Positions 7,740 to 32,400 of a stretch of 64,000 nucleotides of DNA are shown one piece after another. Source of the DNA: Botryllus schlosseri (Eukaryota); the NCBI GenBank assembly GCA_051294905.1, contig CM119386.1, positions 15,252,001 to 15,316,000 on the forward strand, given 5' to 3'. Position 1 is the stretch's first letter. Every line of letters begins with the position of its first letter. The notes beneath the pieces were generated by a model. That model worked only from the letters and a program-made list of their open reading frames with translations. It was not told the DNA's origin and ran no database searches. The translations under genes were made by a program, and so were the position numbers.

Positions 7740-7880
7740 GACGACTGAGCTATTTGGTTTTGTTTCCTTTGTCTCATTCTCTCGAAAAAGGTTGCACTAA
7801 AGGGGAATTACCGTCGACGCAACGATGCTATCGAAGCTAGCGGCATTGAAGAGGAAATCTGGGCTTTGTTTAGTGAGGCG
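7740..7880 (+). other. Candidate first exon (5' boundary unknown)
   Basis: Strong donor GCG|gtgagt after 7880, followed by an acceptor ending at 8257. The segment is CpG-richer than its flanks. An ATG at 7825 is open to the donor. Confidence 0.35.
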
Positions 7881-8308
7881 GTGAGTCCGGTGACATGCGA
7901 TCGGCTTGGCATAGAAATGACTCGCGTCGATATTATCTCAACAAAGTTTACTTTGTTTGCGATATATATATGATTTACTCTGCGTCAAGGATAACGTTTT
8001 CTGTTCTGCGTTGAATAGTCGAACAGGTTGAGCATGACTTCATAAGCTTTATTTGTAAGTGCACCGCTAAATATCGCTAGTCGCAATTACTAAATGCGCT
8101 AGCGCAGTTGTTGCTTTGCGTCGGGCTGTTATCTTGTGATGTAATTTAAAGGCCTAGAGATGCCTGTATGGAACCACCTTTTCAATTGGTCAATATATTG
8201 AGTCGAATCGACTGTTATTTGTTGGTATATAACCTGCTGATTTGATCCTTTTGACAGGCAATCTGCCAATTTAATGTGTAATAATGAATAGAACGGGCTG
8301 ACGACGTT

Positions 8309-8496
8309 ATGAAGGAGAGTGAATTATCAGAATGCATCTGCATCTTGCTGAAGAAATTTATCCCCGAAGATAACATTGTTGACGCTAGAAAGCTGTTTGT
8401 TCGACATGGCATTCTATCAAAAGGTAACATATCTACTCTAAAATGCTTGTTAATTGAAGCGAAGCTTTTTAAACAGATAATGCATTCTGACTTTTG
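8309..8496 (+). CDS. Exon encoding a death-effector-domain (DED)-like death fold
   Basis: MKESELSECICILLKKFIPEDNIVDARKLFVRHGILSKGNISTLKCLLIEAKLFKQI matches the caspase-8/FADD DED pattern (EL..L..L...IP, I.DA..LF, L...N.S.LK.LL), compared from memory. Acceptor ttttgacag ends at 8257; donor TG|gtgaga follows 8496. Helix 1 is incomplete unless a frameshift near 8288 is assumed. Confidence 0.65.
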
Positions 8497-11400
8497 GTGA
8501 GATCATATTATACAATGTTGCATATTGTACACTGTAAGTTACTCGATGAATTGTCAAGTACCTAAAGGATGATACTTTGATACATAAAAGACTTGAGCCC
8601 ATTTGTTATGTTTGGACTAAACTGATACATATTAGGATCGTGGGACTGAAGGAGACCCGGAGTGGAATTGGTGGCAACGTCACGCAGGATTTTCTGTTTA
8701 ATTCCTTAATTATTCTATATAGAAAGGCTCTCATCACGCAGGATTTATTTCAAAAAATGGACAGAGATTCCATATAGGAAGGAGACAATATTTGAAACTT
8801 CACTTCCAGTGACACATCATCATCATCAAGAATAGTCATTGTATCAACAAGTTGCTTTTTTACATTGCATGAAGAATATAAAAGTATAGCCACAGACATT
8901 CGTTCAAATTCAACAACTGGTTATAAAGTGGCAGCTATAAATGAATCCATAAACAGTGTCTCTGGACGGTATATTGAAGATCATACGGTACTTGTTAGTC
9001 CGTTTTCTGATTACTGACTTTTTATATTTTGTTATCTTATCGATATGTTCCAGGCCAGAAGAGGAAATTCAAAGTACCCAAACATCCAGAAGGAATCCGA
9101 CCTTTCTCGAGATTGTTGACTATTGTTACAGAAAAAAAATGCATTGATAAATTGTGCAATGCGATTTCAGATCCAGGTATTTATGGTCAAAAACTTCAAC
9201 TGCAGCCTTGCATTGTTTTTATAGTACTCCCGGAAATTGAGCTCGAGTTCACACGCTTTGCCGTATATCTATAAAAATTCTTCGGCCAGTATTTTCATAT
9301 ACAAATTAGAGGGTTTATGTTGAAACGGATTGAAAATCCTGTATGTCTGTGTAATGTTTTTAGATTTCCCGCTGGATCAAGCCGTTCTCAATCTCATCAC
9401 ATTTGTTGTAATCTTTCAAAAGAAAGAATGGCTTTTTATCATCAAGAAATGGGACGAGAATGGATTTGCATCCTTTGAAGATTTGAAAGCAGTGGTAAAG
9501 AATCCACCAAAGTGGGTTTGACATTCTGTGTCTTTATTACTACATGTCCCAATCACAACGGTCTCGATTTCAGAGGAGATTGGTTTCAAGCAGTCTTGTT
9601 GCAAGCATTTCATGAAGTAGTATCTAATGATACAGAGCAACCGGCATTCGAAGCCATTATGTCAAAGATCTCAGTAAGTTACACTTATAGAGACTGTTAT
9701 ATTGTAGAATGTATGTTAAAGGTAATATATTCTTACCAAGTGACTTCCTTGACCTTGTATACTATAATATTTGTCACCATTATTTTAAATTGCCACAATT
9801 CATTGGTCATTACTCAAAGTAATAGTGACCATTTTGAGATGTAGTGTGATTGCCCTTGTAGTCACAATGTGGATTTATAGTTTGATTTTGAGCTTGATTG
9901 GGGAACTACTATAAAGTGACATGACCATGACCATTCGTATCATTGAATCAGGCTTTGAGATTAGGTGTTAGACCACGTTAGAACCTACCTAGTTGGGTGC
10001 TGGGCAACTCTGGTATTTGAAAGATTTATATATTTCTGCAATATGGTAGTACTGCTGGCTCTGGATAAATTTTCAATTACTATCTGTCCTTGATACACTC
10101 AACATTCCTGAGAGATTGAAGGGTATATCCTAGATGTGTATGTGTGTGAATTCGTAATTCCCAGAGAACTTAGGATTGACTGTAGTCACCTAAGTGAACC
10201 CTACGATCAGAAACTGCAACATTGACATTACCTAAGGGGTGCTTTTCTTGTCATGACCTGTGACGAGGGCCTTCATAACACTCATACTAGAACTAGTGCT
10301 TGGTAAACTCACTCAAGTACCTGACTCATTTGACTTCAAGCTGATAATGAGGCGTTCTGTTGTGTATTTGGGTATCGGTTAGTGTGACTCAAACAAAACC
10401 ATTGTCAGTTCAAATTTATAGATTTTTCAGTGATAAGATACAAAATTATGCCGGTTGAACTTCCTTGAAAACTGCATCTGGCAACCGAGAACTGTTTACT
10501 ATAGTGACTTCTGTCCATGATCAGTGATCGCTGTCCAGTGTTGTTTAAACTGTTGTTTCAATGAACATGATGCTGTTTTTCCATAATTGTATGTGTAGTA
10601 TATAGTGGTTTCAACTTTCAATGTTCCATTAGTGATAATTCTTGTTTATCAAATATTACTTGGTTACACGGAATTGCATTTTAATAGTCTTGAAAATCAT
10701 CTGCTAGTATTCATCTCGAACCGTGTCGAAGCTCAAATCTCAGTGCTCGTATTGCTGTGTCAAGCCTTATTAAAAGTAATGGTGTGATTTTAATATAAAG
10801 ATACCGGAGGAATCAGAAGAAAAGACATCATCGCCAGAAACTGATTACCACCTGAAATCGGATATTACAGGTGCACATGTTACTATTCCACACCTTCAGT
10901 ATTGTGAACTGATATGCAATATATATCCTATTTTAAAATTCATCACAATGAAATAGATGCTATAAGAGATATTCAACAGTACTCCTGATACAGTAGTCAC
11001 TCTCTAATTGTATTTCTGACTCTGAGTCAAATATCTAGAGTGTAGTGATGTAGGCTACCAATTAAAAGTAATCTTATCCATCTGCCTTCATTAGTGCATT
11101 AGTGTTTTGGATTTTCCTTTCTGTGGAATAGGTCTTATTTTGATAGTGGAGTTTTGTTTGGATATTACTCTCTCACAACGCGAGAAAGCAGTGACTCTGA
11201 AGTATTACTCATAACTTAAGGTTTACTGAAATTCCTCTACAATGTCACTCAATACCATCTGCTACTTATCACAAAATGTTGTACGGAATGTTACAAGAAA
11301 ATATATCATACCAATTCAAGTTAAACGTCAATATCGTTCTGGCAAGGCGATGGAGGGCAAGAAACTGATCAATCTCAAAGTCAGTTATAGTCTTTAAATG

Positions 11401-14400
11401 TGTTGTGCATTTTCATTATTTTTCAGTTGTGTAAATGGCAACATCTATTCTATAGTTTGTTCAGTTTCATTTTATCATTGAGACCAGCTTCCAAATGTCA
11501 TAAGTGTGTGTAATGTTTGCTAGACTAAACCAAAGTAATTATTATCTTACTCTCTGTCTCAGTGGAGATATAAACCAAGTATGGGTTGTTGATTGAGCTT
11601 CATTGCTTCAAGACGTCTTGTCAGATTGAGCGCAGGTAAAACATCAACATTATTTCTATGTATTCATACTCAGCTGAAGTCAAGAATGGGAAAGATGTAT
11701 CTGATACTCAAGATAAAAACGGTGTCAACTCAGCAGTAGGAAGTGGCAACGTGAAAAATAATGTAACTGCAGGTAATCAGTGTACAAGTTCATGGTTTTT
11801 CTCTTAAGTTTAAGCATTACTCCACACATTACATCATACTTCAAGGTAGGTGTTTTATGAATCAGCCAGCAAGTGGTTCTGATCTTTCATAGTCATGCAA
11901 AAACCTGATGCCAATGCTGTTTGTGATACTCAATCACAGACTGATGATAGTTTGGGTAGCTATGACCAGACCATGACGTTCAACTCTGCAATAACCTTAT
12001 GACACATCCGGGGCATGCAAATTCTTACCTTGATAACCGAAGTTCAATAGCTCGTCAGAGTACACTTTTTAATATAGAGGTTCTCGAATCGACTATTGTA
12101 CGTCTTCGGCTATTATATCCAATTTGTGTTTGTTTTGTTTCTTACATGCTTGATTAACAGCCTTTTGTAATCTCTCTTATTGTTGTTTTCTGCAATTCCT
12201 GCATCAGACAGCGTTATTTCATATATAAATTTGGAATTTCGATCTCATCATTTACTGATGGTTGTTCTCTATGAGAATCAGTTGAAAGTCGTAGCATGAA
12301 TAAATGTATCAATGTAATGTACTGTTCGTTGCAATTTTCAAATTTTGGAACACAAGGAACTTATAGATAGCAGTAAATCAAGTGTCACATCATTACTTCT
12401 TTGTCCTAAAAATGTCATTTAAATAAGATTGGTAATTTATAACGTTACAATAAAGGCGTTATTGGTATATAAACTTATTGTGACAGCGCGGGGTACACAG
12501 CAATCACCAAAACTTTACAATGAGACTGTATCTAGATTCCCCGAGTGGATGTGGGAAAAAATCTGCAGGGAAGAAGTCCAAGGAGCTAAAAAGTAGTCAG
12601 GAAAATACAGGCTCGGGGAAGCGTAAAGCCATTGCAACATATTCAAGTGAGTTTTCAAGGTAGAGCTTTGAGATGGAAGTAATGTTGGCAGACTTGTTCA
12701 CCGTATCTATTGTAACTTATTATTCCTTACAAATTCATATACCGTGTACGTTTGAAAAGACGTAGGCGATAGTGTGCAACAAGTTTTACCGTTTCACCAT
12801 ATGGAATTGAAAAGCTTGTACTAGTATAACTGGAATAAATTGTGTGCAGTCGGCTCATAACAGCGTGATTTCAATCATCAAAACCACTTTTCATATTTAT
12901 CCCCAAATTGAGTTTGCATATTTCCATAAAATATTCTGGTAGAACACTTTCTCTGTGTTCTTTTTTTGGTAAACATTGGTAAGAGAAGGTTTAGGCCTAC
13001 TGTTGTAGAATTAACTTTTTCTTGTGAATAATCAACGAGGATTGAGCAGTATTCAAATTCTACAGTAGTCATCTTCAGTACACCAATCTTCTAGGAAGCG
13101 ATAGTTTGATTATGTATTTGTCTCTATTTTTCTTTGGTAATAATTGTGGTCGCATTTTATCAAACCTTGGGCTAGTGCAAACGTGTCGAGATTTCCGTTT
13201 TGGTAGTGTTGGCAAAGTAGAGTCTTTTTACATGGGCATGGCTATTTCACACTTATTGTTGACCGCTGCGTTGTTAGTGCCACCGTTGTAAATCAGAAAT
13301 TTTAGTTTCTAATTACTGGGATATATTTTGTCAAGGTGTGGTAAAAAAGGACAACAGCAAACGAGATGGAAAAAATCTGCCACAAGGTTAGTTAATACAT
13401 ATAAATTATTATGAATATTTTTTGATTTTGCAAATCCAAATAATCATCATATTCTAATATTTAAATAGATGATATGTTCTTTTTACATTTTGTAAGTTGA
13501 AGAAATCCACAGCATTCATCTATATAGTTCTTGCAATTACAATCCATCTTCTGCGAAATATTTTCTACTTGCTGAAGGAGACAAAAATTCTAATGGCTTT
13601 GTAACGACAGAAATCTATGTATCATCAGGCTTGGTGTTTGATGAAATGTTTCATTGGGTTGTTGAGACATGTTCTTTTCAGGCCTAATGTCTTCTATTGT
13701 GAATGAAATAAGCAATTATCTCTGTACATAGTACCTAAATCTGGCAATGATTCGAAATGATGAAATTATCTTGTTAATGAATTAATGTTGAGAGAAACTG
13801 AACTATACATCCATTCTATAAATCTCTTTTTAGGTGAAGTAAAGAGAGGGAAAGATAAATCAAAGAACGTAAATCATGATAAAAATAGTACTCCGTCTTC
13901 CAAGGAATGTAACAATGTGAAAAGCAACGGAACCACAGGTAATCAGGCCTATTTTTTCTGTGGGACTTCATTTCAATATTTCAGATAATTCCGTAGGGTT
14001 AGGAAGGGTGTATGGTAAATATATAAGCATATGATTCTCACATTCCATTCTATTGCATAGGTACTAGGGTTGTTCAAAATTTGGAAAATGTTTGGAATAC
14101 TGCGTATCCATGCCTTATTCTGTAGATTATTGTTAAAAACAATATTGGGCATGAAAGAAGCTCGCAGGAAAGTCAGTCAGATTTGTCTAAATGCGTTTGA
14201 AAGTGGTTGGTGAAGAGTGGACGGGCCACCGACAGCAGAGTTGCGAAAAGGCGGGCAATCGCGAAAGCACGGTTCTTGATTGGGTAATCGGCTAAGCTTC
14301 AATGATTACTGCAACAGCTGACTCGGATCCGGGTGCTTCGCTTTACTAAATTGAAAGTCTGCTTTGCTGAGGTCGAGTCTGTTAGCAGCGGCTGTGGTTC

Positions 14401-17400
14401 TGTACAAGCGCGTTGTGGGTTGATGAGTCATTAGTAGTACTGTAACACGTGTTCTTTGAATGCTTTAGAGTCTATAGCAGTAGTTTATGCTTTGGAGCAA
14501 CAATATTGCAGTCATGACAGAGGCAAAACGGCGAAAGATTGTACACATGCCGCAGCGAAGAACAAGATCTAAATCTGAGCAGTACCGTACTTGGTCGGAT
14601 ATACTTGCGATTATATCTGTGGCTCGAGATTACCTACTATAAGAGAAGTAATGAGATACTTGCTGCATCTGAAAGAGCATTGTCCTCAGACAACCCCTAC
14701 TCATGAACTATGTGATGTACTGGTGTTAGATGATGTAATGACAGTGTGGAAAATGGCCAGGATTGAAAACCTCCACGAAAGATGGCGTGATCACATGGTA
14801 TGCCCACCTTAAGAAGAGCTTGAACACTGAACAGTCTTGACAGAAAACAGCAATTCAAGACTCTGACTATTCCTATATGTTTTAAAGAACAAGCAGCAAT
14901 GACAGTTGATAACTTCAAGCTACTACTAACCAGATAAGATTTCTTCCCACGGGATGACGACAGCCAATGTGTGAATAATGCTCTTGCGCTTCTCGGTACA
15001 GGTGAAGATATACATCATCACAAACCTGGTGCAACACACCATGCAAGATGGATGGGCACAATTCTGTATGCTCAGAAGATGTTCATGTGGGCTTATCAGT
15101 TACATTACAAATCTGAAGAAGTGGCACTACTGCATCGCTTCAATTTGTTTTTAGTTCACTTTTATATACCTGCCTGGATTGATTCCAGCATCAGTCGTGA
15201 TACAACCGGTAAAGACTTGAGATTCACTCAGGACATGTTGAGTTACAAGGATCATGATGAACAAGCTTCCAAAGCTGCTTTACAAAAGCTTTTAAAGTAT
15301 GACTGGTATATCGTGGAGGAAACCGCTGTATATGCTTTGTTTTCGCCGAGTGAAAGCATTGAAACCCGAGAAAATATGGCAAAGATGCTCCTGCAGGTAG
15401 TGCAAACTTCAAGTTTCAGAAGGGGCCCGGCCTCGTTTAGTGCAACTGTACAGATCAACAAGGACACTACTTTTTCTGTCTTTATTTGCCCACAGACAGG
15501 GTACATATTTGATCATTTTGAATGCTGTGGGGCGTGGCTAACTCAACCGGTTGATGTTTGGAACTTATCAGATTCCTACACCAGAATGATCTCCTACATC
15601 AGTTCTGTCAAAGTCGTTAATGATGCCGCAGAACGAGGTGTAAAGCTAAGCACAGACTATGCTGCAATCTTGACTGACAATGAACAAAAACAGAGACAAT
15701 CTGCTTCAAGCCATGGAAGACAGTTGGAGACAGCAGGAAGTCAACTCTAATCAAAAGCCTGTAATCTGCAACTTGTGCCTGACAATGCAACACTGATCCT
15801 GCAGTGTACTTTTTCAATGTCTTTCGTAAATAGTGCTTTTTGCCTTCATTCAATTGTGAATAAAAGTGTAATATGCATTCGTTTATTGGTGAGACGTCGA
15901 CTAGACATAACAAGTTTTACTGAGATGTTGACTACTGGTAAGAAATTTGTTTTGGAAAGGTTCAAGGTAGCAAGATGCATGCATCTAGTTAATTCGTATC
16001 TCAACTAGCGAGAGCACCTGTGCAATACATAACAACACTGTTATACACATTCTGCATGTAGATAATAACTTACGGGTTGTGGTGTTGTACTATGGACTCT
16101 CGATGACAACATTTAACAAACACAATATATCATGTCTGCAATGCCACCAACAGAAACGACAGGGCACAGAAATCGTTACCAGCAGTGTTCACAAAGTCGG
16201 TCTTTCAGCCAATCAGTAGCTTGGTATTACCGGCTTCAACCAATCAGGATTATTGCTTTCTGTTTGTCCGCCCACTTCATCGATGCCCCGCCCACTCGCC
16301 GACGGCTACTTTCAAACGCATTTTGACAAATCTTACCGGCTTTCCTGCGAGCTTCTTTCAGGCCCATTATTGTTTTTTAACAATAATCTACAGAATAAGC
16401 CATGGTTACGCAGTATTCCAAACATTTTCCAAATTTTAAACAACCCTAATATGTACGATGATTTGCATTGACCGATATTTCTATGAACAAATGTGTACTT
16501 AAATAGCTGGTTCGTGGTACAGAACTTGAATATAGCTTTCAATACAACATCCATTGTAGCAGTATATTTATTAAACTCGAAGACTTTTCGGGTGCCTTTT
16601 GAGCGTATTAAGCAGCATATCCCAAAATTGATTCGGTCAAAAACATGCACAAATGATCGCACGGAGCTCGCACGTCAGTGCAAATTGGCTGCAAAAACAG
16701 ACTGCTATGATGATTACCAAGCATATGCTTCGTCAATCGGTCAGCATCTGAGCGAAAACCTTGCCTGTGCACAGCACTATGATGACAATACGTTCACTGT
16801 CATTGCGCGTGGTAGGTCTGTGTTTCATTTAAAAGTGTTGGAGTCTACTAGTATTCAGTTGAGCAAACCTATTTTATGCAGACAGAAAGATTTCATCTAT
16901 AACCTACAAATTTCTCATTAGTGCGTGTTGTTCCGTGCGTGTAATTGTTTATTTACAAATTGTGCTGCTACTATAGTACCGTATGTCCGTATACTTCGTA
17001 GTTTGTTATTGTTGCCATTGATACAATGCGAATTTCACGGTCTGTGATTTTGATTGTTGCGTCATACGTTGCCTTTTTGGTTTTGCTTTTAAATCTGTTT
17101 AAATCCCTTCAGTGTGCCGATAACTCTTGAAAAGAGGCACCCGAAAAGTCTTCGAGTTTAATAAATATACTGCTACAATGGATGTTGTATTGAAAGCTAT
17201 GAACAAATGTGTGTGTGTTATATTCAAACCTTTACATATGTATTCCCGGAATAGGCAACAAATTTTACATTTTGACTCACTCTGATCATGCAACATTGAT
17301 TTGACAGTTGCAGAGACCGGATCCACTCCCAGTCCTGAATGTACTGAAACTACTCATGATAGGGCTGACCGAGAAGGTGCATACAGTGATATTTTTCTAG

Positions 17401-20400
17401 TTACACCATTTGATTTTTCACAAGTTAACAATCGTTAAAAATGTTCTAAAGTGTTTTCATATTCCGGTGTAAATGAATTTTAGAACATCCATACAACACT
17501 CGTGGAAAACAAAGACACAATAACTTTGCTGATCTTGCAAGAAATGATGTCTGGCCTGAAATTATTCAAGATAATGAAAGTAAGTTTCTAAATAAAAGAT
17601 ACGAAGTTGTAGTAATAATATTAGTCAGGACATGGGTTATGTATTGAGTAACCACCATTCATGACGTATGTCATTTTAACCTTTACGAAGCCAATCAGAT
17701 GATTAACAATTTAGTGCATATTTGTTTGGAGATGGCAGGTACCTCATTCATCATTCGAAACCATTGGGATTGTTTTTAAAATCATATCCCATTGGCATGC
17801 ATTTATTCCTTCAAATCTTCTAGGGTTTCTGGAGATTCGTGTTGTGATCTCAAGATCCACGGTCCTACCACCTGATTGCAAACTTTCAATGATATATCAA
17901 GATAACGATTACACACCTGTCGAAATGGCATACAATGGAAGGTAGACTGTATTTGTTTGTTCTGCTTTCAACTAGATATTCCCTTATTAGGCATAATATA
18001 ACCTAGTATAACCATATTCATAGACAATAGGCTCTGAGTTGTTCTTGAATGGTCAGTACAGACCAGGGGTTGGCGGACCAGATTTTAAACGTGTTTGATA
18101 AATCGCGTATATATCCAATCCACGCTTATATGGAATCGGCCATATTTAATGTAAACATCGACATTTTTAAAGCATAGTATAGGACAGTTGTTCCTAAAGC
18201 GGGCGCCAGCGCCCCTTTGGGTGCTCGCGAGCATGAAGCAGGCGCTGGTCATGAAATGGGCGATTAAGGGGCGCTGGCTATAAAATTGGGCGGTAGGGGG
18301 GCACTGAGAGCAAATGGGGGAGTAGTAGGTTGTAGGCCGCGTAGTGTTGTAACGTTTGATAAATAAAGCAGTTAAAGACGCAGTAAAAACCCAAAATCGA
18401 TTCAGTGAGGGCAATTTCGGATCGTCCGTCTATTTAATCAGATATGCCGGAAAGTCCATTGTTACTTGACAATGTTGATCAATGTCAATCAATGGACTAA
18501 TTTAGCAGTCGGCAGAATCACTAGAAAGCGTGGTTCATTGTGTGGTGTGAGAACTACGAAGTATTTACTGAGCAGTTATTGCTCACTGCATGGTGTGATG
18601 ACTCTTTAACCGATTGGCACCGGCTGCCATTTTCGAAAAATTTTACTTCATTTTTCAAAATCGAAAAATGGTACCTTCCTGGGATCCGAACACTGTAACC
18701 AAGGTGTCGTTCGATTCAAAATATCAACGCGCAACCGATTGCGCCATCCAATCGCTAGCGACGCCGTGTCTGATTACTTATATGAAGAGCAAGCCGAGAA
18801 AATGTTGGTTGGGAACAGACATGCTAAGTTGCGTACTTTATGAACCTTGGTATAGGTATTCGACGACGATACAGTCTCGTGTATTGTATAGGCTCAGAAT
18901 TCATCGTTCTAGAGAGCCCTGAGTCGACGGTAAACGTCTAGCAGGCGCTAATTTCTAATCAAAACAATACCGACCGTTTTAGTCAGCTCGCGGCAGGCCG
19001 CCGAGAGATTGCGTCATGGCGAGTGATGCGCTCGTGTATGGAAACTTCTAAGGCTTATAACTCAAACTGTTGTGACCCTATATTAGTCTTTTTAGTATTC
19101 GTAGACGGATATTTACAGTCCTTACCATAATAATTTACTGCAAATGCTTATCATTACTACAACGTAAGATATATATCGATGTACGACAGCTCTTTGTATA
19201 CCCAGACGCACGCTTTTACGCAGGTATAATCGCTGAGTAATATTGTATGAATTCCGAATTATACTTTACCATTAGCCGTTATTTAGAATCATATAGGCAA
19301 CAACAATTCACAGACACAATCTATGAAGGTTTATGGCTATTAGAATACGATATATTTCACGTTATGTGACGGGTATTCAGCCTTGTGCTTGAAGCTGGTA
19401 CGGTAGTCTGACGGAATTCGCTTCCCGGTTTTTAAATGAAACTTTGAGCGATATAGAACTAACGAGTATAGTTGCTTTAGCAAAATATAAACAGAAACTG
19501 ACAATCGCTATTCATAGCAACAAACTACAGCTGATTATGACGAATAAAACCAACTAAACGACAGTGTATATGGCGGGTATGAGGAACGCGCGTGTCTGCG
19601 AAATGATGCTTCGGCGGATATTTTTGTCACGCGGCCTATCACATGGCTTTTGATCAGCTTAGATGTAACTAATATCAGATATGAAGATATGTGTGGACTT
19701 GTATGGACACTAGCTATTCACATAATGAAACAACTATGCCCGAAGACGGCTAGAACGAAACATACAGAACGTTATCTGAGAGTGGTCAATGACGCGCGAA
19801 TTGCCGACACAGTGTATTTTGCAACATATTTATCTACGGTGTTTGATATACGATTTTGACGTCTTCTATATAATAAATATCATATAACAAGGTATCAATG
19901 AACTTGTACGAACAATATCTATTCACAGAAATTAACAGCAACGACCTAGCACGATTAATATGTAATATATCGTGGTTTCAATTACGGTACTCTTCTCTCG
20001 TACCGGCATGTCGAAAAATAGACACGCCGGTGCCAAACGGTCAAGAGAAAATATCTTGCGTGAATAAAAATCTCTGTTTCAAACGATGCTGGATTTTCCG
20101 CGGTGCTGCGACCGAGCCTTCAACATGCGCATTCTGGTTGCGAGAAACTTTATATCGCTTCTACTTGACGGACATATCTTCACAAATTTATGAGTAGAAT
20201 ATATCCGTTCTTAGTAATGATGAAACCAGATGAAGGTGAAATGGCACTGTCCAGATTCAACTATTCAACTATTACTCTTGCTGTTATATACGCCAAGCTC
20301 ATATAATATATACTACCACGCAGAAAAAATTTCTACTACCTGAGAGTACTTTTTCCTGCCGACTACAAAAGACCATTTCTGTACAAATACTGCTATCGAG

Positions 20401-23400
20401 ATGGAAAATCTTGCAAATACGAGGAATTTCGTTGGAGTGGAACTCAGAATCGATCAATCAATATTGATGAAGGTAAGTCAAAACTCAAAATATTATGTCC
20501 ATACTTTTGTTGCGACTTTTTCTCTTAGCATCATCATGTGTCAGTTTATTCATCCTGCTATATATCCCTAAGTTCGGAAGTTTTTCTCACCTAGCAATTT
20601 GTGTACCCCACATTTATTTTTCAGTGACAACTTCGTGGCTGATAGTATTTGATGTTTGCACATTCAATCGTATATATGAATGGGGAAACTTCTGTGGAAA
20701 AGAACTTGATGCTTTCCTCCCAACATCATCTGGTGTTTTTACATCACATAAACATCCGAATGATACCTCGGTCACCACTGATTTGTATTATTGGCTTAAC
20801 CGTGCACGATTTGGATGGACTTTGTGTTCCGATTATGGATGGTCATACTATGGAATGACTGACCACCTTCTTGCCGATCCATCTGTAAGTAATAGTATGC
20901 TACATAAATCAGACATGGGGTGATTACTTCATGAATGTAATCGATTGCGATTACGATTACTTCAGAATCACGCGATTACGATTACGATTACAGCAAAATC
21001 AAGAAGTAGTCGATTACGATTACATTGGAAAAGTAATCACGATTACTCACGATTACATTTGTTTTGCTTCTTAGAACTATAATCTTAAATGATATATCGG
21101 AAGACAATACAAGGATTGCTATGAAAAGGCTTAATGAGATATCAACTCTCTTCATACATCATGCCTCATTTGCTTATTACGTCATAATATACCAATTGCC
21201 CAACATTATAGGGGATGATTTATCGCTCCCAATGATTTGCATTATTGCCAGGTTTTTACTTGCCGCACCCCAAATTCCTTAATAGGGTAGGGAGCGTGCT
21301 CGAAGGGAACTCAAAAGTATTTCGTAAACCAACATAAATTATAGAGTATTTTCGAGAATTTAATTAATTCTTGAAAATGTTCTTCGAGCTTTGCGATTCA
21401 AATGTCTCTAGTACGGATGTCACCCACGCGGACCAAATGAGTCATCCGCGGTCGCTGTAGCAAATATCCGAATGAGAGATTTGAAAGTTGAAGCTGGTTT
21501 CATATGACCCGTAGTTGAACATGGGTCGGCCGACCCCAAGTAACATACGAAAGCAGTCGCTCGGGGCATTGCTCGTCTTCGCCCACGCGGCGGCTCAACG
21601 GGAATCTATAGTTAATATCCCCGAGTCTTGACGCGGAGATCGGCGCTTCAGCGCGCACTGCAGCAACGCAACTGAGCCTGGAGGAGCTGGTGTGAGTCCC
21701 GGCGAGTGAGCGTTTTTTGTTCTTGGTAAGGGGCGGAAACCCGGCCCAGTGCTCTGATTGTCTTACTCTAAGTGAAGAAATCCAACTGAGCACGGATAAA
21801 CGGCGGGAGTAAGTGGTAACCCGTCGGTCATCGCAATAATCAGTACACACTACACAAGAAGTAGCTTTTTGTTTCAAAACGGTTGGTGACCCATGCTCCA
21901 GTAGATAGCTGGTTTTGAAATGCATACCTCTTTCCCTCAAGAAAAACATGTGTAGGCTATTTTTATGGGAACAGGCATTTCGGAGCCGGTCATTACCGCG
22001 CCACGATCCCACAACACACCAAAAGACATACGCTATTTCGGCCAACACGCAACTCCACGGGATGTGATACCAAAGAAATACCTTGGCCGAAACTTAGGGT
22101 ATTCGTCCATTGTCAATAGCCGCGCTGGGTGGGCGTGACTAATAACTCCTGTACTTCCAAGCTGGACCCACAATGCAAATGCCACCCGGCGCATCCACAA
22201 AGGAATAAAGCCATGACAATTTGTGTGTGCGTCTCACGAAAGATATTCTTTTAGTCTGCTACGTTTGGGCAAGTACAATATCTTTTGATTATATAACAGA
22301 CTGGAGGTCGCGAATAAACAACATACAATGAAGTAATTATAACAACATACCAGATGCTATAATTATGAATTACGTGCCAGTGTTGGGATGACTCGAGTCA
22401 TGACTTGACTCGAGTCACCTTTTCGTATGACTTGACTTGACTCGAGTCACTTTGCTAAAATGACTTGACTTGACTTGACTCGGCGTATCAAAAGTGTGGA
22501 TTGACTCGTGACTCGGAGCTAAATTCACGAGTCAATTTCAAGTCATCAATTAGTCGGTGTGGATAAAAATCACTGTATCTTGCATATGTTCGGATTGTTC
22601 GCGAAACACTGATGTAGCCAATGATCGTGCATTTTACTGAGCCTCCATTGTTCTCCCACAAATAAATAGATCACAAACGAAGTGAAGTAGTGAAGTAATA
22701 TAATAGAAAATTATCTATTTCTGTTCTCGGTTCTCACCTTAACCAAACCTCTTGTTTTATTGATTTTGAACTCGAATGTAGTTTGTATACTCCTCAACCA
22801 TTGGTACAGGCTCGAATTGTATCATTTCAATGTGTAAATGGGTAAAGGGTAATGTATTGCATCTTATCAATTCGTTTCTCTATTTTGGCTGGTAACTATA
22901 AACTGAGGCTACATATATGTGATTGATACAGCGCCTTCTTGGGTGTATATTCAACTCTATATTCGTTCATCGGTTCTGAATCAATGACCGCTCAATCTGT
23001 ATTTAAGGCAGATAGTAAAATGTAATGACGTATTCATGCCTCACACCACGAAAAGGCAACTTGACTTGAATTTTGACTTGATTCGTGACTTGACTTGACT
23101 TGACTCGACTTGAGACGAGTCACATCCAAAAATCGAGTGACTTGACTTGACTCGAGTCACCTTCGAAAACCGATTGACTTGACTTGACTCGAGTCAAAAT
23201 CTGCAATGACTCGTGACTCGAAGGTAGTGACTTGATCCCAACACTGTTACGTGCCCCAGCTCTACAGGTAAATCTGACACTCAGGGCTGAGAGAGGTTAT
23301 AAATGAATAGTAATATAATGCAATTACCAATATTATTGACGGAATTCAGTTTTGAAAATTGACCAACGGTTGGTTTGGGGGACGAATTGCTGTTTTGGTT

Positions 23401-26400
23401 CTGATTCTAGCTACAACCCACGCTAACATGTCAGGGTATATAAGCGGATGGTTATGGCGACAGGTCCAAATGCTGAGTAACGAACTGTGAAATAACGATT
23501 GACGCCCGTTTCAAGTAGTTATATGAGAATAAGATATAGTGAACATGAAAATTCTGCCTTCAACTTAATACATAGGCTATACTGCGAGCTGCTGTTACGA
23601 GAAACGGCTAAGCACGGCTCGGTTATGATATATATCATCAGCTGTTTATTTGTAATGCTTCGTTGTGGAAACTGCAATGTTGTATTCGACGAGTACAAAA
23701 TTCCGAATCTTCGTCAGGTGCACGTGCGTACGTAGGCCTCCTGCTCGCCAAGCAGCAACGGTAAACTGCGTTTAGCTAAGCACAACCAAACATCAATACA
23801 TAAGTTACTATTTGAAACTATAGGCAGAGTGGTGATCAATATCCTGCTGCAAGGTAAGGGCTTCTGTAGTGTATTGATAACCTGATATACACCACTGGGG
23901 GTGTTCTTACAATCACACTACAATGTTCATCGCATGTCTGTTTACTATGTGTGGGTGGATACTTCTATGCAATGACGAGCGGAGCTAATACTTCTGACGT
24001 AACAATGAGTAGTGGCGTTTGAAAACAGACGTTTGTGCTATCGCTAACGTGGTATATTATCTCAGTCTTGTTCACGAATATTCAGTTTATGTCATAGTCC
24101 TTGTACAAACAAAAAGTAATCGTTCTTTCCCAAAAAATCGATTAGATATGGGAAGTAGTCGATTACGATTACGATTACTTCGGATTTTTTTCGAATGTAA
24201 TCGATTTCGATTACGATTACTTCAAAATGCTGTAATCGTCGTAATCGATTACGATTACTAATTGCGATTACCCCATGTCTGACATAAATCACAGATAGCC
24301 GTATTATCACGAAAACAATATCGCAAATTACTATTTTTTAATTGATTCAATTCGCCCATGTATGAAGTGGAATTTAATAGGGCAGTGCTTAAAATTGGGT
24401 TTTATTCCTCATTTTATTTCAGATTTATGAAATGGCTCTCATTTCTTGGCTGGAAAGTCTAGATTTGTGGCGAAGTGAAAACAAAGGCAGCGGACAAACC
24501 CAGACAGTTGCTCGAATTGCTCTGGTCATCGCGATGTCTCTTATAAACCAGAGAATTACCAGAAATGAACTAGTCCGTAGACTGTTTGTAATGCTTGACA
24601 TCAAGGACTGGAATCGAATGGCATGCATGGAATTTATTGAGGAAATCGACGGCATGAGGAAGTATTATGAAAGCTCTGGGTGTGTATTACGATATTAGAA
24701 ACTTACTAACAATTAAAGATTGTATACCGCATCCTTCATATTTTCTATCTCCGATCACGACGTTACGCCGATACCAGACAACATATATTATGATAATGAA
24801 GATATTGGTACCTGTCAAGCTATGTCTACTTTCAATTCAATAATCTCATCATTGAAATCATTGCTATTATTAGGTTTTTTGAATTGAAAGTGGAAGTTAA
24901 ACAAGGTGTGAGACTGTGAGAGCTACAAAAACTTATGTTGTTATGTTGTCAACATATTCCAATTATGTTCACACCTAAATCTCTATTTCTCAGATTCACT
25001 TTACCATCGTCTCATGAAGCCTTGCTGTGGATGTACAAACATATTTCCCGCTGTCCGGAAAACCTTGATTGGATCCTGACATTACCTTTATTCTGGCTGA
25101 TCTGGAACCGTAATCTGAAAGGAGAATGTACTGTGAAATCGGGTATGAGTAATAATCCCAATCAAGCCGGTTTACCTTGTATGGGAGTTATTGATTGGAT
25201 CGGAATTCGGCGGTCATTGATGACAACTACTGTCAGGTGGGTTAAGTGAAGTATTTGATACATGTAGTGCATTTTTTACCTTAAAAACCCTGATTTTTAC
25301 CATATGTATGTAAATTAGGTTTTTCCCACATAATGTTAGAATTGTACTACTTATCTTCATTTCTGGTTGGAAATGTCTGTCCTTACGAAGTAGTCTGACC
25401 TGAAAAAACTTATTTGACTTGAAAACTGACAAATTTTTACATTGAAAAACTATATTTTAATGAAATCTGGGCCTATGAAGAATTCCAGTAGCTACATCAC
25501 GCATTATGGTAGAAATATTTCAAATTTGTTGTAGTACAACGAAAGATACTTTCCTGCATTCTCGGGTAGAAAGTGTCTATCCTTACTTAGTAGCTGGCCA
25601 CGAATGGAGAAAGAACGTTCAACAGCAGCATTTGTTGGCTGGCAACACTGAAGTTGTGCGACATGCGTACACTGCTGGTGACACACCGTGTTGCTTCATG
25701 CTGACAATGTTGTCTACATCACCATTTTTTATCATGCGCTTCTTGATATAAGGACCAATTCCCACGCAGTCTTGCTTCAGTTAGGATATTGCAGTACGTT
25801 AGGCATAACACCATGTCAACCTATTTGTTTCATTTGGCCATTTGTAATTCACAATGAACAGATAATGGGCCATCTACAGCGGTAGACCTAAACAGTAGGC
25901 TAAAAGCTGTAAAATGTCAAATGATAAGTTCACCGACAATTTTTTGACCTAAGGCTACAATTTTGACAAAATTATGACTTATTTTGACATCTCAAAAAAA
26001 CGCCCTATATATAAGGTGTCCTTACAGTACTTATATCAAATTTCTCTCATTGTTAAACAGTATCTGTGCATTTGCTGTGGGTATATTCCCGTGGCTTGAA
26101 TTTTTTCAAACTTTCATTAGCACCGGGCGTAATGCTTCCTCGATGTTATTATACTATCACTTACCAGTACACCATTTTTCAGATCTCATTTTCTTCAAAT
26201 GATTCCAAGCGTTTTGAAGCTTTTTGAATTGCATCCATGGATCATTGGAACATTCCAGTTCCTAGTGAACACGAGAGAACTCATTCATTTGGTGCATGAG
26301 GAAAATAAAATTGTTGAATATTTTCGACTAGATACAGCCTTGCAGCAGTATCTGGAAGGAGTTTACCAGAAAAAGATCAAAATGGTACAGATTTCATTGT

Positions 26401-29400
26401 TTTATATTTACGTGAGAAATCTACTCTAAAACTCTGAAATTTGTCGATTGAGGTACTATAATTCTTTTTATGACCAATCTGTGACATTTTAATTTATGAT
26501 GTAGTAATGCTGATGTAGTAATTTATTATATTCTGGTTTCAGCAGGTTGAACTAGTTCATGCTGAAATGTTGAAGTTTTGAATTTTTAATCTACTCTACT
26601 CTTTATCTACAGAGCCCTGAAGAACTGGCATCCTTTGATAAATATTTTGCAAGATGCCTTGATGATTCAATTGGTGCCTGCGTTGACCCAATTCATGACT
26701 CGTGTACATCCCAGTGAGTATCTATAATTTCCTGTTTCATGTGCACTGTAGGACTACACTAATAAGGCAATGCTGATATAATGACTTCTTTTGAAGGAAC
26801 ATACCAATCTGTTCTTGGATTCTACGATTGTTAAACGTGGCTAATGCAATTGATCTGTGTACTACGTACTTACATCACAGTTCACTTAATTTGGGGGAAA
26901 TAAACTTGACAGATAGTCCATTGTAGATTGTTTTATTGGAATCTAAGTGGACCCCAGACATTGAAATATTTCTATGCCTATTACCACTCAGCACTTGCAC
27001 TGAATCTTCCCACTTTGTTGAATTAGCATTTCTCATCTATTTTCATCCCATATAGATGCTTGTCGTAATGCTGGCAAGTGGCAAAACTAGTTAATCATTT
27101 AATACTTAGTAGTTGCCGTTTACAATTAAGGAAAATGACAAAACGTTTTTGTAAAATCTCTATTACAGTGATCCTGGAAATGCTCAAGATGCAACAGTTT
27201 GTGTCAACTTACTCAGCATATCTGTGACGTATATGGACAAATATTTCGATCCTGAATCAGTGATTCGGTTTGTTGAAAATATTCTGCTGAAGGCCGTTCA
27301 CTGGGCATCGCTTTTGAAACTGGTAGGGTAGATGGTATTTTGTCTTCTGTTTGTAAGTGTTCGTAATTCTTTTAAAAAAAGATAGGGATATTGGCAAAAG
27401 CTCATTGTCAATCTTGTTTGATGTGTTCAAAATGCCTTTTCCATGAAACCGAAAACTAAAACAATCATATAGTGACTATGTGATATTCTGCACAGAACGA
27501 GGATGGATCAAAATCCATCTCTGTAGTGTCACGGAAAGTCTCAGATGCAGTTTGTAACATGATTCATCGAAGAAAGATGGATGGCAAAGAAGTCAAGGTA
27601 TGTCTCTTTGAATTTGGCGTTTATTAAAATACTTAAAAATTTCATTAGCATGTCAGCATCATCATATATTCCTATTTAACACGCTCTTCCATTTCTATTA
27701 CTATATTTTTAAACCAAATCCTTTTGTCTCCGTTCTCTTCTCATTGTCGAGATGAAAATATTTTGAGTAAATGCATGTATTTCCCTTTTCTTTCAGTTCT
27801 GGGACTGGGCAATGAGCATTGCTTGGAAGCTACCAGACTTTACAGAGCAGTGGAAAACTCGACTCGATCAAGAAATAAAGAACAAAATCCAAAATGTGAG
27901 GATGGAGCAATAATTTCCTCAGTTAATAAAATACGATCTTGAGCAATGATATATTTTTATGAATATTTGTTAGGAAGAAATGATCCTGTAGACCAGCGAT
28001 TTCGAACAATTTTTGACCTTATGGCAGTCTATCGAATAGTTGTGAAGGCAACCTGACCAAACTAGATCAATTTTATGAAGTTTCTGTGAGTCGAAGAACT
28101 ATATAAAATATTATAGATTGAGCTGCACAAATGTATGTTTACACAGTTTACGACACTACTTTATAGAAAATTATAACTAATCAAGTTTATTTAGAAGGCA
28201 TTTGTTAAAGTTGTGCTTGGGTGTATTGGCAACGTCCTTCAATATGCAGTCAGTAAAGCAACCCGCATTTTATCCTTGACTATACATGGTATAAGTAGTG
28301 TTTCTGTAGCGCTTATATGTAAAGTCATGAGGAGTAAATATTGTTTTATTCATTAGGAATGATGTTATACTTATCCACTGTCCTATTTTTCAGCAATGCA
28401 AACATGAATGGCAATTTTCTGAATTTCTCGACTTTTATGCTACAAAACTCACGGATCTGAAATTGGAAAGTGAAGTTCAGAAACATTTTGACAACAAAGC
28501 CTTTGAAGTTGCGGGAAAAAGTATGCAGCAGCCTAAGCAAGTAATTCACATTCTCCATATAGCTTACCTCGAATTGAGAGTCAATCTGTAGTTCAGGAAC
28601 ATTCAACTATAATTGAATTCTTTTGAGGTGGCAATGTTAAAGAGATGGTGGAAAAACATCACCGATCAATTTGTGGATAAGTCAGCACACCCTGTTGTCG
28701 TGATATTCCAGAAATTGTTCTTCCAAGCACAAGGCAAAGCACACCGGCAAAAATTCACACAACAGACCAATGCTCTCAATTTTGTTTGCAATTGGTCTTT
28801 TTCGGTGCAATTCTGTGAATTATTCGGTGAGTATGCATTTTTTTGCCAGCATGTTTTTAAACCCGTTATTGATTTGCTGATATGGCAGAAGTATCTGAAT
28901 GACTAGAAATGGTCGGCAATTGATCTAGCACCATTATTGTCTCACTCATTGATAGCCACTTGTGATACCATAAATCTAAAAACTCCTAGTCTTGGGAAGA
29001 GTATATTGAAGGATTTGCACCGTGCTAATTAATATTCATCCATAGCTTTGGATTCTCTCTACATCAGTGGTTCTCAACCTTTTTGACCTCGCGGCACATT
29101 TTGAAAACGAAAAATAGTTCGTGGCACACTAGCACAGTGGTTCTGAACTCTTTTGGCTTACGGCACAGGCAAACTACCAGAATGCGTATATCAGCAACCA
29201 TAGTCTTACAGAGGTGGTCACTGACAAAGTACTTCTACCTTTTCGGAGCACTCAAGTAGGCTTTTCTCTGCTTGAGTTTTCTTTTATCTCTGCGGACATC
29301 TCAGAAATATATCTACGAATGGTATCATTTGACATGGGAATCGTTTTCAATTCTTCCCAAACATTTCTTTACAATTTTATTGCAGGCCGGAAGAAGAACT

Positions 29401-32400
29401 TTCTCCGCTTCCGTGTGAGGTTTTGAATTATCTCCTATTACCTCTGATACCACATAACTGTCCTGCTGAGATCTCGTTTAAACTCCAGGCTGAGCATAAT
29501 TTCATAAGATTAGCTTGACAATAAAGTCTGCCCACTGACGCATTGTTGATGTAATTAACCGTCGCATCGACTAGTCCAATCAAGATCACCACTAACAAAT
29601 ACAGAGGCGTAGAGGTGTATTATACATGGATGCCAAACGCATTTCCACGCAGATCGTGTAATAGCACCTGTGAGGATAGTATACCTCAATAGTGTTACTG
29701 GCAGCCACCCGCAGTTCAATTGTATTTCTAACAAACCAGGATAATAAACCTCAGCGGCGGTGGAATTTGTAACTGATATAATTTGATTAACTTTACTTCG
29801 CAATTCTCGAATTTGTCGCCTGCAACATAATGTTCCGCCATGAGCCTACATTTTACCTGCAGTGTTGGCACGCTACCTAACAATCGCAATGTGAATGGCT
29901 ATGTTGGCAATTCTAATTTGTAAACGTGAACATCACTTCCAAATGAGTTCATTTCTCGATGGTGAGAATGCCTTCCTAGGTGTTGGTGGTTAATGTTGGC
30001 TCCTACTCATCCGCCGATCTGCAAAAGCAGTGTCTTTCAAAAAGCGGGCCGTGCTATATGTTGGCATCTCAGGAATCAAAATAAGTAATATCGGTATGGT
30101 GTAAAATGATCATCGATGACGAAGACAGAAAAAGGTCATCAACCTGCATCATGTCCCTGTTCTGACTCCGGTTCTGATGGGTGACAAATAAAATGTGAAC
30201 ACTTCGGCCACACCTCAATATCACGGTCCAATTGCCTAAGTTTAGTTATCACCGTCCTAAATGCCACTATGTTGTGGGCAAACTAGCATATCACACCCAT
30301 TGACGGTGGAGGCTCCAGTTTGATTTATGGCAGTGAAGTAACAAGTTACGAAGCGTCGCAGATTTATTAGATTCTCCGCCCCTGTACGTAGCTGTGCTCA
30401 GAGCGTCTTTACAATGAAAATCCCTGAGAAAGACCCAATCCATGACCTAACGGGGATGTCAGATTTAGATACTAGATCGAGATACCGTAACTACGGTCGC
30501 CTCGACATCCTTATATCTGTTCACTGCATCAGATTGTGCATCGCGTGTCTTGATCGGGTAAATGCAATAGAAAAACCAACAATGACACACTCAAAATTTG
30601 GATTTTTGTTATACTTCGACATAGTTTACCACATTTGCTCGCGGCACACCTGAGCAGTCCAATTGGCACACTAGTGTGCCGCGGCACACCGGTTGAGAAC
30701 CACTGCTCTACATCATCACTAACCAACTAATTCAAGTCTAGGATGTGCCAACTTAAGTATCATGAAAAATATTGCGCGATTTTTCATTGTCTTACAGATT
30801 GCCCTTTGTACTATGGTTATAATATACCGCATCACTTCCACTTGAGTCAAAACCATGTTAAGATCCACCAATTTCTGACGTTTGATTGATTTTTATCATC
30901 TTTACAGAGCGGTTTCGGAAATCTTTCTCGGAGGACGCTCTCAGAATAATCTCAGGTGTCTGGAAAGACTTTCAAGCCGTTGTGGATTTGTTCCGCACTG
31001 ACGGAATACTTGTGGACCAAATGAACATTATTGTTACTAATGAAGAGAGATTTTTCCTTCTATGTGGTGTTTTGGACTGTGCGAACAAGGTAACTAATAT
31101 CCATTGCACTGCATTTAAATTTGTCTGGGTAAGAAACTTTACATAGAAATAGAAATAACAAACTCCTACTGATGCAGTAGCAGTTTTTTCTGTGGTTTGT
31201 ATTGACTAATACCTTAAGTTGAAATACAAGTTGTTCATTGAATTCTTTAAATTCGATTTTACAGCACTGCACTCTTTGTTTCAATAAATGCTATGACAAT
31301 CGCTTTAGTCTTGGCTAAGCTGGTAACTTAAACATTAATTTGTTCTTGACTTCGCCATTTTTAGGAGAAATCAAGCTCATCCGTGGACAATCATGGTAAT
31401 CTGACTGAATCAGTGAGAATCATGAAGGAATGCCACAATGTCTTCAAACGAACAAAAGCTTGTGTGGAAGACTTTACGCACCTATGCAATTCCATAGAAT
31501 TTGGTAATATGTAGTTTCATAACTCGTCCAAGGGTGTTTTAAGACAAGCTTTTCTAATCCCGTTATTCGAAATTCTGCTTAGACGTTCTGTTCTGTATTA
31601 TTGCGCACTATGCAATTAAAAAGATTTTAGTTCTCTTTCTGTCTCAGATGAAGAATCTCCCCCACATGATGAGCTGGAAAAATTGTTGAAGGATCCAACA
31701 AACAAGAAAAAGGTCATTGATTTGGTGAATAAAGATGATCGACAAAGAAGCACTGATTATTTTGGAATCACTGAGGATCAACTCGAATCATTTAAAGAAA
31801 TCGCTTTTCTGAAGGTACTGTTCTGTCTTTTTGATAACTGTTGGAAGTCGAGGCCTAGTTTATGCCAGTGCACAACCTCTTGATAGCAAATTTGTTTACA
31901 AATGTAATTTCTCATGTATAAGGCTCGTGTTTTTACATTTTCCAGAAAGTGAGTGGTATACGTTAAATTCATCAAATATTTTTAAATTCTTAAATTCCAC
32001 GGTCAAAAACAAATTGTACAATATATGGAATCAACTGCGTATTTGAATAGATCACCTACCGCTAATCTCTGTACTTCACGGCATCAATTAATCACCATTT
32101 AATGATGCAAATATCCTTTGCTCTACAACTACATACACGGTTTGTGAAGTCTCCTTCAGTTATGCGAGTTTGAATTTGTTAGAATATAGAACCCGAAATT
32201 CTCTACGCTCTAGCACACAACATTGTTATTCGAAGATGAGTGTCTACTGTATGAATAGTATTTTCCTTTGATAATGGCTTAACGCATGTTCGGAAGTTCA
32301 TGTAAAAGAATTGCAAGTTACTGGAAAGTTGTTTACACCAATAAATATAAATTTACAAACTATGGTACAGGTAGCATGTTAATACATTTCTGACATAATC

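Follow-up and report, generated by a model that had tools for sequence, protein, structure and literature searches.

The 64,000-nucleotide stretch of Botryllus schlosseri DNA analyzed here (contig CM119386.1, positions 15,252,001 to 15,316,000 of the forward strand; hereafter the window) carries on its plus strand a single, very large RNF213-family gene, the 3' end of which lies beyond the window end. This is probably a single gene whose product starts with a CARD-like head, followed by a helical extension of about 60 residues, a low-complexity linker encoded by cassette-like exons, the N-arm, the AAA+ core, the RING and the RZ finger. We show that the exons from 9054 to 13938 form a continuous chain, that the N-terminus is homologous to that of annotated full-length tunicate RNF213-like proteins and that this protein family has a CARD-like fold at its N-terminus. 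RNF213 is the largest human E3 ligase and the major moyamoya susceptibility gene, and it also acts as a cell-autonomous effector of immunity by ubiquitylating bacterial lipid A. An initial annotation of the window had described an RNF213-like giant with a FADD-like head composed of a death effector domain (DED) and a death domain (DD).

The description of the gene as an RNF213-like E3/AAA+ giant was borne out and, judged from its sequence, the gene is a member of the RNF213 family. The RZ finger was recognized by Pfam near the C-terminus (PF20173/ZnF_RZ-type, E=2.7e-17, 62.6 bits vs. a cut-off of 27, within 54292-55272). The RING finger (PF13920, E=1.6e-7, above the cut-off) occupies residues 832-880 of the E3 exon at 50440-53850, which comprises 1,137 codons. 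In tblastn comparisons the window was collinear with residues 626-5141 of the 5,235 amino acid protein P0156 from Styela clava, the best overall match of the body (48% identity over 3,530 aligned amino acids), with 56-72% identity across the AAA exons. Weaker collinear matches extended back to P0156 residue 483 and were also present for residues 87-118 at exon 3. From the collinearity up to residue 5141 we infer that the gene has about 5,100-5,200 codons and just leaves the window at its 3' end. Pfam made no AAA call when the AAA exons were scanned one by one; GETGCGKT and GKPGSSKS, both Walker A motifs, can be read directly from the translated exons. When the E3 exon (1,137 amino acids) was searched against 1.84 billion representative proteins, 150 RNF213-like representatives were found and nothing else. 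The nearest named full-length relatives come from ascidians (Styela clava, Clavelina lepadiformis and Ciona) and are termed E3 ubiquitin-protein ligase rnf213-alpha-like; vertebrate RNF213 ranks next.

The coding part of the head begins with an ATG-initiated open frame at 8309-8497, upstream of which an in-frame TGA is present at 8285-8287. The first exon had been given as 8309-8496, which is too long. The donor at 8496 ends in phase 2 and, when joined to 9054, runs into a TGA at 9145-9147. The donor between 8423 and 8424 ends in phase 1, as exon 2 requires, and only this one of the two keeps the frame into 9054. The donors were tested with a profile built from nine tunicate N-termini, from which the window sequence was excluded, and three exon models were scored. 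The short exon 1 (8309-8423) together with exons 2-4 reached 30.7 bits over residues 2-111, exons 2-4 without exon 1 reached 16.7 bits, and the long exon 1 (8309-8496) together with exon 2 gave 7.0 bits with only residues 2-39 aligned. In a phmmer search against 260 proteins, residues 1-165 of the short-exon-1 model matched residues 13-167 of P0156 (E=7.7e-8), and the alignment was unbroken over the 8423/9054 junction (GILSKGQKRKF vs. AVVSKGQAKKV in P0156). Homology to the N-termini of five RNF213-like proteins from Styela likewise continues over this junction without a break. The segment 8424-8496 has no counterpart in the homologues and adds nothing to the profile score.

For RNA support, the stretch 7760-13759 was compared with RNA data carrying the same species label, namely two sets of contigs and two runs of raw RNA-seq reads. 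RNA depth over 8360-8559 was about zero. All reads over 8282-8359 carried G8314T and T8327G and diverged completely after 8359 into related coding sequence, encoding VPVDKVAEEE where the window has IPEDNIVDAR. These variants and the divergence indicate that the reads stem from an expressed paralogue with a homologous first coding exon and 5' untranslated region. No junction read decides between the donors 8423 and 8496, and it is the homology across the junction that points to 8423. The segment 8424-8496 is thus read as most likely an intron. With the donor at 8423, 25 residues of the supposed DED motif (8424-8496) are intron-encoded. The initial annotation had considered the frame stop-free from the 3' part of exon 9054-9176 onwards; the open chain stands, and with the short exon 1 the frame is open from 8309.

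An additional exon within 8497-9053 that would rescue the donor 8496 was also considered, and none of the 22 open candidates had RNA or homology support. Usage of donor 8496 instead of 8423 would give a 93-residue product ending at the TGA 9145-9147. Ahead of the start codon, an acceptor is located at 8257/8258. Further upstream, 7825-7880 is a candidate for a non-coding 5' exon and has a strong donor (GGCG/GTGAGT at 7880/7881) and a short upstream open reading frame; RNA depth there was low (0.65) and no joint was reported.

The exons from 9054-9176 through 13834-13938 are all bordered by AG and GT and together form one stop-free frame. RNA contigs from two studies showed the joints 9511>9574, 9673>10801, 10870>11674, 11772>12536 and 12646>13336, all with GT..AG ends. 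The joint 9511>9574 was present in contigs of two RNA runs, with 0 mismatches in the X1 contig, and this joint and 9673>10801 were both found in X1 and X2 contigs. For 9176>9364, the ends of X12 reads past 9176 matched the first letters of 9364 at 16 of 18 positions, and for 13386>13834 a contig end past 13386 matched the exon at 13834 in 27 of 30 letters. Of the series of junctions from 9673 onwards that had been proposed as a check, the contig joints 9673>10801 to 12646>13336 were thereby recovered, while 13938>17824 lies beyond the RNA stretch. In exons 3-4, some RNA contigs were identical to the window. The differences found in exons 2-3 were conservative in frame, with one synonymous change followed by K>R, V>I, I>M and G>A. 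The five short linker exons (10801..13938) are rich in K, S, N and G, and a low-complexity linker occupies the equivalent position in P0156 and other tunicate homologues.

The fold of the head was modelled on the closest homologue, using residues 1-175 of P0156 in AlphaFold2 and an alignment with eight further tunicate N-termini. The model (predicted template modelling score 0.75) contains six helices between residues 6 and 103, and block means of the predicted local distance difference test (pLDDT) were 84-95 for residues 11-100. Past residue 103 the helices are shorter, and pLDDT was 50-68 beyond residue 120. In a VIA-align comparison of this model with 48,161 PDB chains, for which 50 rows were shown, the best matches were CARDs, namely Dark/Apaf-1 (Z 9.1), MDA5 (8.6), SP100 (8.5), Apaf-1/caspase-9 (8.4), BinCARD, RIG-I and CED-4/CED-3. 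The top CARD matches (Z 8.0-9.1, root-mean-square deviation 2.5-3.5, 88-99 residues aligned) comprised the whole CARD over model residues ~5-105. CARDs made up 16 of the first 17 rows, and death-fold domains accounted for 47 of the 50 rows shown. The list was homogeneous and did not consist of mixed helical bundles; PYD, DD (Z 6.0-6.3) and DED (Z 5.7-5.8) structures appeared lower down. On the sequence level, Pfam CARD (PF00619) matched Ciona P0016 over 75 of 85 profile positions (E=3.8e-4, 20.8 bits vs. a gathering score of 23.9), and CARD_2 (PF16739) matched P0157 (E=1.4e-4, 22.2 bits vs. 28.2) and, likewise below threshold, P0160 (E=0.0036, 17.7 bits). The best PDB sequence match of the family profile was the CARD-only protein ICEBERG (E=0.085).

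Residues 2-111 of the window protein align to the tunicate family profile, and the head is predicted to be a single death-fold domain of the CARD-like, six-helix type, about 100 residues long and encoded in exons 8309-8423 and 9054-9176 and the 5' part of 9364-9511. The six helices expected of a CARD were found in the modelled N-terminus of P0156, and the death-fold N-terminus put forward for this gene was supported, as one domain, by this model and its CARD matches. It appears to be followed by a helical extension of ~60 residues (window residues ~101-162), which contains conserved W..W(D/N) and DWPLxFI-like motifs and matches no known fold here. No second death fold was detectable, and residues 106-175 of the P0156 model matched no death fold in VIA-align.

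We then asked how the head is connected to the RNF213 body. The linker exons end in phase 1, the phase that exon 17824 takes up. When 12 exons between 8309 and 20905 are joined, the model encodes 490 residues with matching phases and no stop, in agreement with the statement that no in-frame stop separates the death-fold part from the RNF213 exons. The frame of 17824-17941 has no methionine ahead of the conserved region. The region 17824..20905, which appears beta-rich from its sequence pattern and contains a YKYCY motif, is homologous to the post-linker region of tunicate RNF213-like proteins (P0158, E=1.7e-7; P0153, E=3.3e-7; P0156, E=2.4e-4). With the spliced head as query, the matches retrieved by jackhmmer were confined to the very N-terminal ends (~residues 5-168) of five RNF213-like proteins from Styela, and the profile of the head also matched Ciona P0016 at residues 29-139. 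The order of CARD-like module, linker and N-arm region is modelled at five separate Styela clava loci and in Ciona, and head (spliced residues 1-165) and body have the same nearest relative, P0156. The proposal of a single protein uniting a death fold with RNF213 gained support from these relatives, as at least five Styela clava paralogues, and Ciona as well, have module and body annotated within a single protein. These indirect lines of evidence agree with head and RNF213 body being encoded in one gene.

Several observations weigh against a single gene with a CARD-like head. In the RNA over 7760-13759, no junction read 8423>9054 was seen for this gene copy, and several RNA contigs differed from the window by 1-10%, which indicates that they derive from alleles or paralogues. 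An RNA joint 13938>17824 was not obtained from this stretch, and the full-length tunicate proteins are automatic gene models. The latter two points, together with the 3.9-kb transposon-filled intron that separates 13938 and 17824, could also be explained by two genes, a small CARD-plus-linker protein upstream and an RNF213 that starts separately downstream, in which case the fused tunicate models would be prediction artefacts. We consider this unlikely, because a phase 1 end meets a phase 1 acceptor in a stop-free model of 490 residues, the frame of 17824-17941 offers no methionine before the conserved domain, the same module order recurs at five Styela loci and in Ciona, and P0156 is the nearest relative of head and body alike.

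Further points of this kind concern the fold, which was read from the closest homologue. Window exons scanned singly had no Pfam death-fold match, and none of the matches to CARD or CARD_2 reached the gathering score. VIA-align Z values of 8-9 are within the range (below ~13) that the tool flags as possibly generic for helical proteins. Foldseek searches of the PDB and the Swiss-Prot part of the AlphaFold Database with the whole 175-residue model gave nothing significant, with RIG-I/NOD2 tandem CARDs only at E above 1, and a shape search of the Atlas with the same model was equally without a significant result. This lack of whole-model matches is likely due to the low-confidence second half, which spoils a global alignment. 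The sub-threshold Pfam matches, the Z values inside the stated background and the Foldseek result would all be expected if the N-terminal module were a lineage-specific helical bundle without death-fold function and its resemblance to CARDs were generic. However, the structural list contained almost nothing but death-fold domains, with CARDs at the top and matched over the whole domain, and separate sequence methods agreed with it (Pfam CARD/CARD_2 in three members and ICEBERG at the top among PDB sequences). A generic bundle is, in our estimation, slightly less probable still than two separate genes.

The FADD-like head of the initial annotation, with a DED at 8309-8496 and a separate DD at 9054-9673 recruiting DED caspases, is very improbable. 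The read-through of exon 1 resembles DED helices by eye, and the family belongs to the death-fold superfamily, with DED and DD structures low in the list at Z 5.7-6.3. Against this stand the stop at 9145 when 8309-8496 is joined to 9054, the tail 8424-8496 without counterpart in the homologues, the single six-helix bundle of the family model with no death fold in residues 106-175, and the finding that neither DED (PF01335) nor Death (PF00531) of Pfam matched the window exons or the nine homologous N-termini. In addition, E1 alone (63 amino acids, modelled by AlphaFold2 without an alignment) gave a pLDDT of 62, three helices and no death-fold match. The alleged DED exon thus lacks a Pfam DED match, 25 of its motif residues are most likely intron-encoded, and the DED matches of the family (Z 5.7-5.8) rank below those to CARDs. 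The exons 9054-9673, regarded as DD-like, hold helices 3-6 of the single domain plus the helical extension and have no PF00531 match. Instead of a DED followed by a DD, there is one death fold, closer to CARDs (Z 8-9) than to DD (6.0-6.3), and the Pfam check that had been suggested yielded CARD/CARD_2 below threshold in three relatives. DED/caspase-8-type proteases as partners do not follow from a single CARD-like fold, for which CARD-bearing partners are to be expected and not DED caspases.

Other searches with E1 led no further. Foldseek found nothing for its AlphaFold2 model as a standalone fold, a PDB sequence search returned only chance EF-hand-like matches and none to DED, and look-alikes in the ESM Atlas did not exceed 0.74. 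Homologue searches, for which E1 and the open frame around exon 4 were the queries, gave no candidates within a search length range that excludes giant proteins.

The resulting architecture can be compared with known systems. Vertebrate RNF213 (mysterin) resembles it in the N-arm, the AAA+ core with two Walker A modules, the RING-containing E3 module and the RZ finger, and it has ~45% identity to the tunicate query P0005 in the AAA region. It differs at the N-terminus, where the scanned vertebrate-length homologues are without a death fold; to our knowledge, no death-fold domain is described in the published RNF213 structures. Apaf-1/Dark/CED-4, NOD1/2 and NLRC4 likewise have a CARD at the N-terminus, in front of an ATPase machine of the AAA+ class, and the CARDs of Dark, Apaf-1 and CED-4 are the best structural matches of the tunicate family's domain (Z 8.0-9.1). 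However, Apaf-1/NOD-type proteins are STAND ATPases that oligomerize into caspase-activating platforms and have no sequence relation outside the CARD, whereas RNF213 is a ubiquitin ligase with a dynein-like ring of six AAA modules. cIAP1/cIAP2 unite a CARD and a RING E3 in one polypeptide, and the cIAP1 CARD (2l9m) was among the structural matches (Z 5.7). cIAP1 has its CARD at an internal position, whereas the CARD-like domain described here is at the N-terminus, with ~4,000 residues and a flexible linker between it and the RING. RIG-I/MDA5 have N-terminal CARDs followed by an ATP-driven sensor, and their CARDs rank 2, 7 and 11 structurally. They contain two CARDs and a superfamily 2 helicase, whereas here one CARD-like fold is detectable. 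FADD shares the death-fold superfamily but consists of DED and DD, whereas the domain described here is a single one without DED/DD signature and nearer to CARDs.

CARDs act through homotypic CARD-CARD contacts, and the CARD of cIAP1 autoinhibits RING dimerization. By analogy, homotypic CARD-CARD interaction appears to be the most likely mode of action of the tunicate domain, either recruiting the ligase to CARD platforms or partners or autoinhibiting it. In the first case, the CARD-like domain would anchor the AAA+/E3 machinery to partners or filaments that contain CARDs, candidates for which may be CARD caspases, Apaf-1- or NLR-like ATPases and RLR/MAVS-like adaptors. In the second case, it would restrain the ligase until activation, as the cIAP1 CARD does. 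Either way, RNF213-type ubiquitylation would be coupled to death-fold signalling. A more far-reaching idea, which we consider a long shot, is that the N-terminal CARD of tunicate RNF213 paralogues nucleates or joins CARD filaments and so wires microbial-surface recognition and ubiquitylation to CARD caspases or adaptors, and that it was lost or replaced in vertebrates. If true, this would establish a one-protein link from pathogen coating to cell-death or inflammatory signalling. A death-fold head on the RNF213 paralogues of the closest invertebrate relatives of vertebrates provides a concrete connection of RNF213 to CARD signalling to test.

The distribution of the N-terminal module was also examined. 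It was shared by none of the 150 RNF213-like representatives from the search of 1.84 billion proteins, and ten long homologues from that search had no death fold at the N-terminus. At the N-terminus of the vertebrate-length homologues that were scanned, nothing beyond a zinc ribbon was detected, apart from a NACHT domain near the N-terminus of one (P0039), and a death-fold N-terminus is unusual in comparison. The tunicate N-terminal profile did not match the vertebrate RNF213 proteins that were fetched. Clavelina lepadiformis proteins apparently contain the module more than once (P0157, residues 16-65 and 198-295; P0161, residues 278-316). No death-fold domain is listed in the precomputed Pfam annotations of tunicate proteins, and a 24-mer spanning an exon junction had no match in JGI metagenome contigs. 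With zinc ribbon, NACHT and CARD-like domains at the same end of the protein, the poorly understood N-terminus of RNF213 looks like a hotspot of domain gain or exchange. In the full-text literature searched, no paper was found that describes a death fold, whether CARD or another type, in RNF213 from any species; the architecture proposed in the initial annotation had likewise been given there as not known to be described. The features of the gene are compiled in Table 1.

Table 1. Positions of the head, linker and body features of the RNF213-family gene in the window
Feature	Position	Strand	Remarks
Exon 1	8309..8423	+	Start codon, residues 1-38, helices 1-2; donor AAAAG/GTAACA, phase 1
Read-through, most likely intron	8424..8496	+	25 codons, 'GNISTLKCLL...'
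Exon 2	9054..9176	+	Residues 39-79, helices 3-5; X12 read cover; aligns to P0156 residues 45-86
Exon 3	9364..9511	+	Last CARD helix and start of helical extension, conserved W..W(D/N) motif
Exon 4	9574..9673	+	End of conserved N-terminal helical module (~residue 162); aligns to P0156 up to residue 167
Linker exon	10801-10870	+	Phase 0 to 1
Linker exons	11674-11772, 12536-12646, 13336-13386, 13834-13938	+	Each phase 1 to 1
First N-arm exons	17824-17941, 20324-20472, ~20625-20905	+	Phase-matched to 13938, stop-free
RNF213 body	24393..63693	+	N-arm and linker, AAA+ core, E3 module; tblastn collinearity, Pfam
Walker A exons of AAA+ core	43516-44376 and 46059-46694	+	
RING	52933-53079	+	PF13920
RZ finger	54958-55101	+	ZnF_RZ-type

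The introns contain further elements. Much of the intron 13939-17823 is taken up by a transposon-like insertion at 14062-16451, the inverted terminal repeats of which (14062-14232 and 16280-16451) are 84-95% complementary. Within it, an open frame of 270 codons at 14938-15747 had no Pfam match; in the Atlas it lies nearest to clusters of eukaryotic proteins that have protease-like Herpes_teg_N domains (PF04843; score 0.90), which we regard as a lead only. When the whole window was scanned against Rfam, no family was identified at gathering thresholds. A 69-nucleotide inverted repeat at 16532-16600/17132-17200 is 99% complementary, with its arms 531 nucleotides apart. In intron 1, a segment of ~120 nucleotides (8656-8778) had very high RNA contig depth (X1 mean word depth 251) and many different flanks at both ends, which makes it look like a dispersed repeat transcribed at many loci and not like an exon of this gene.

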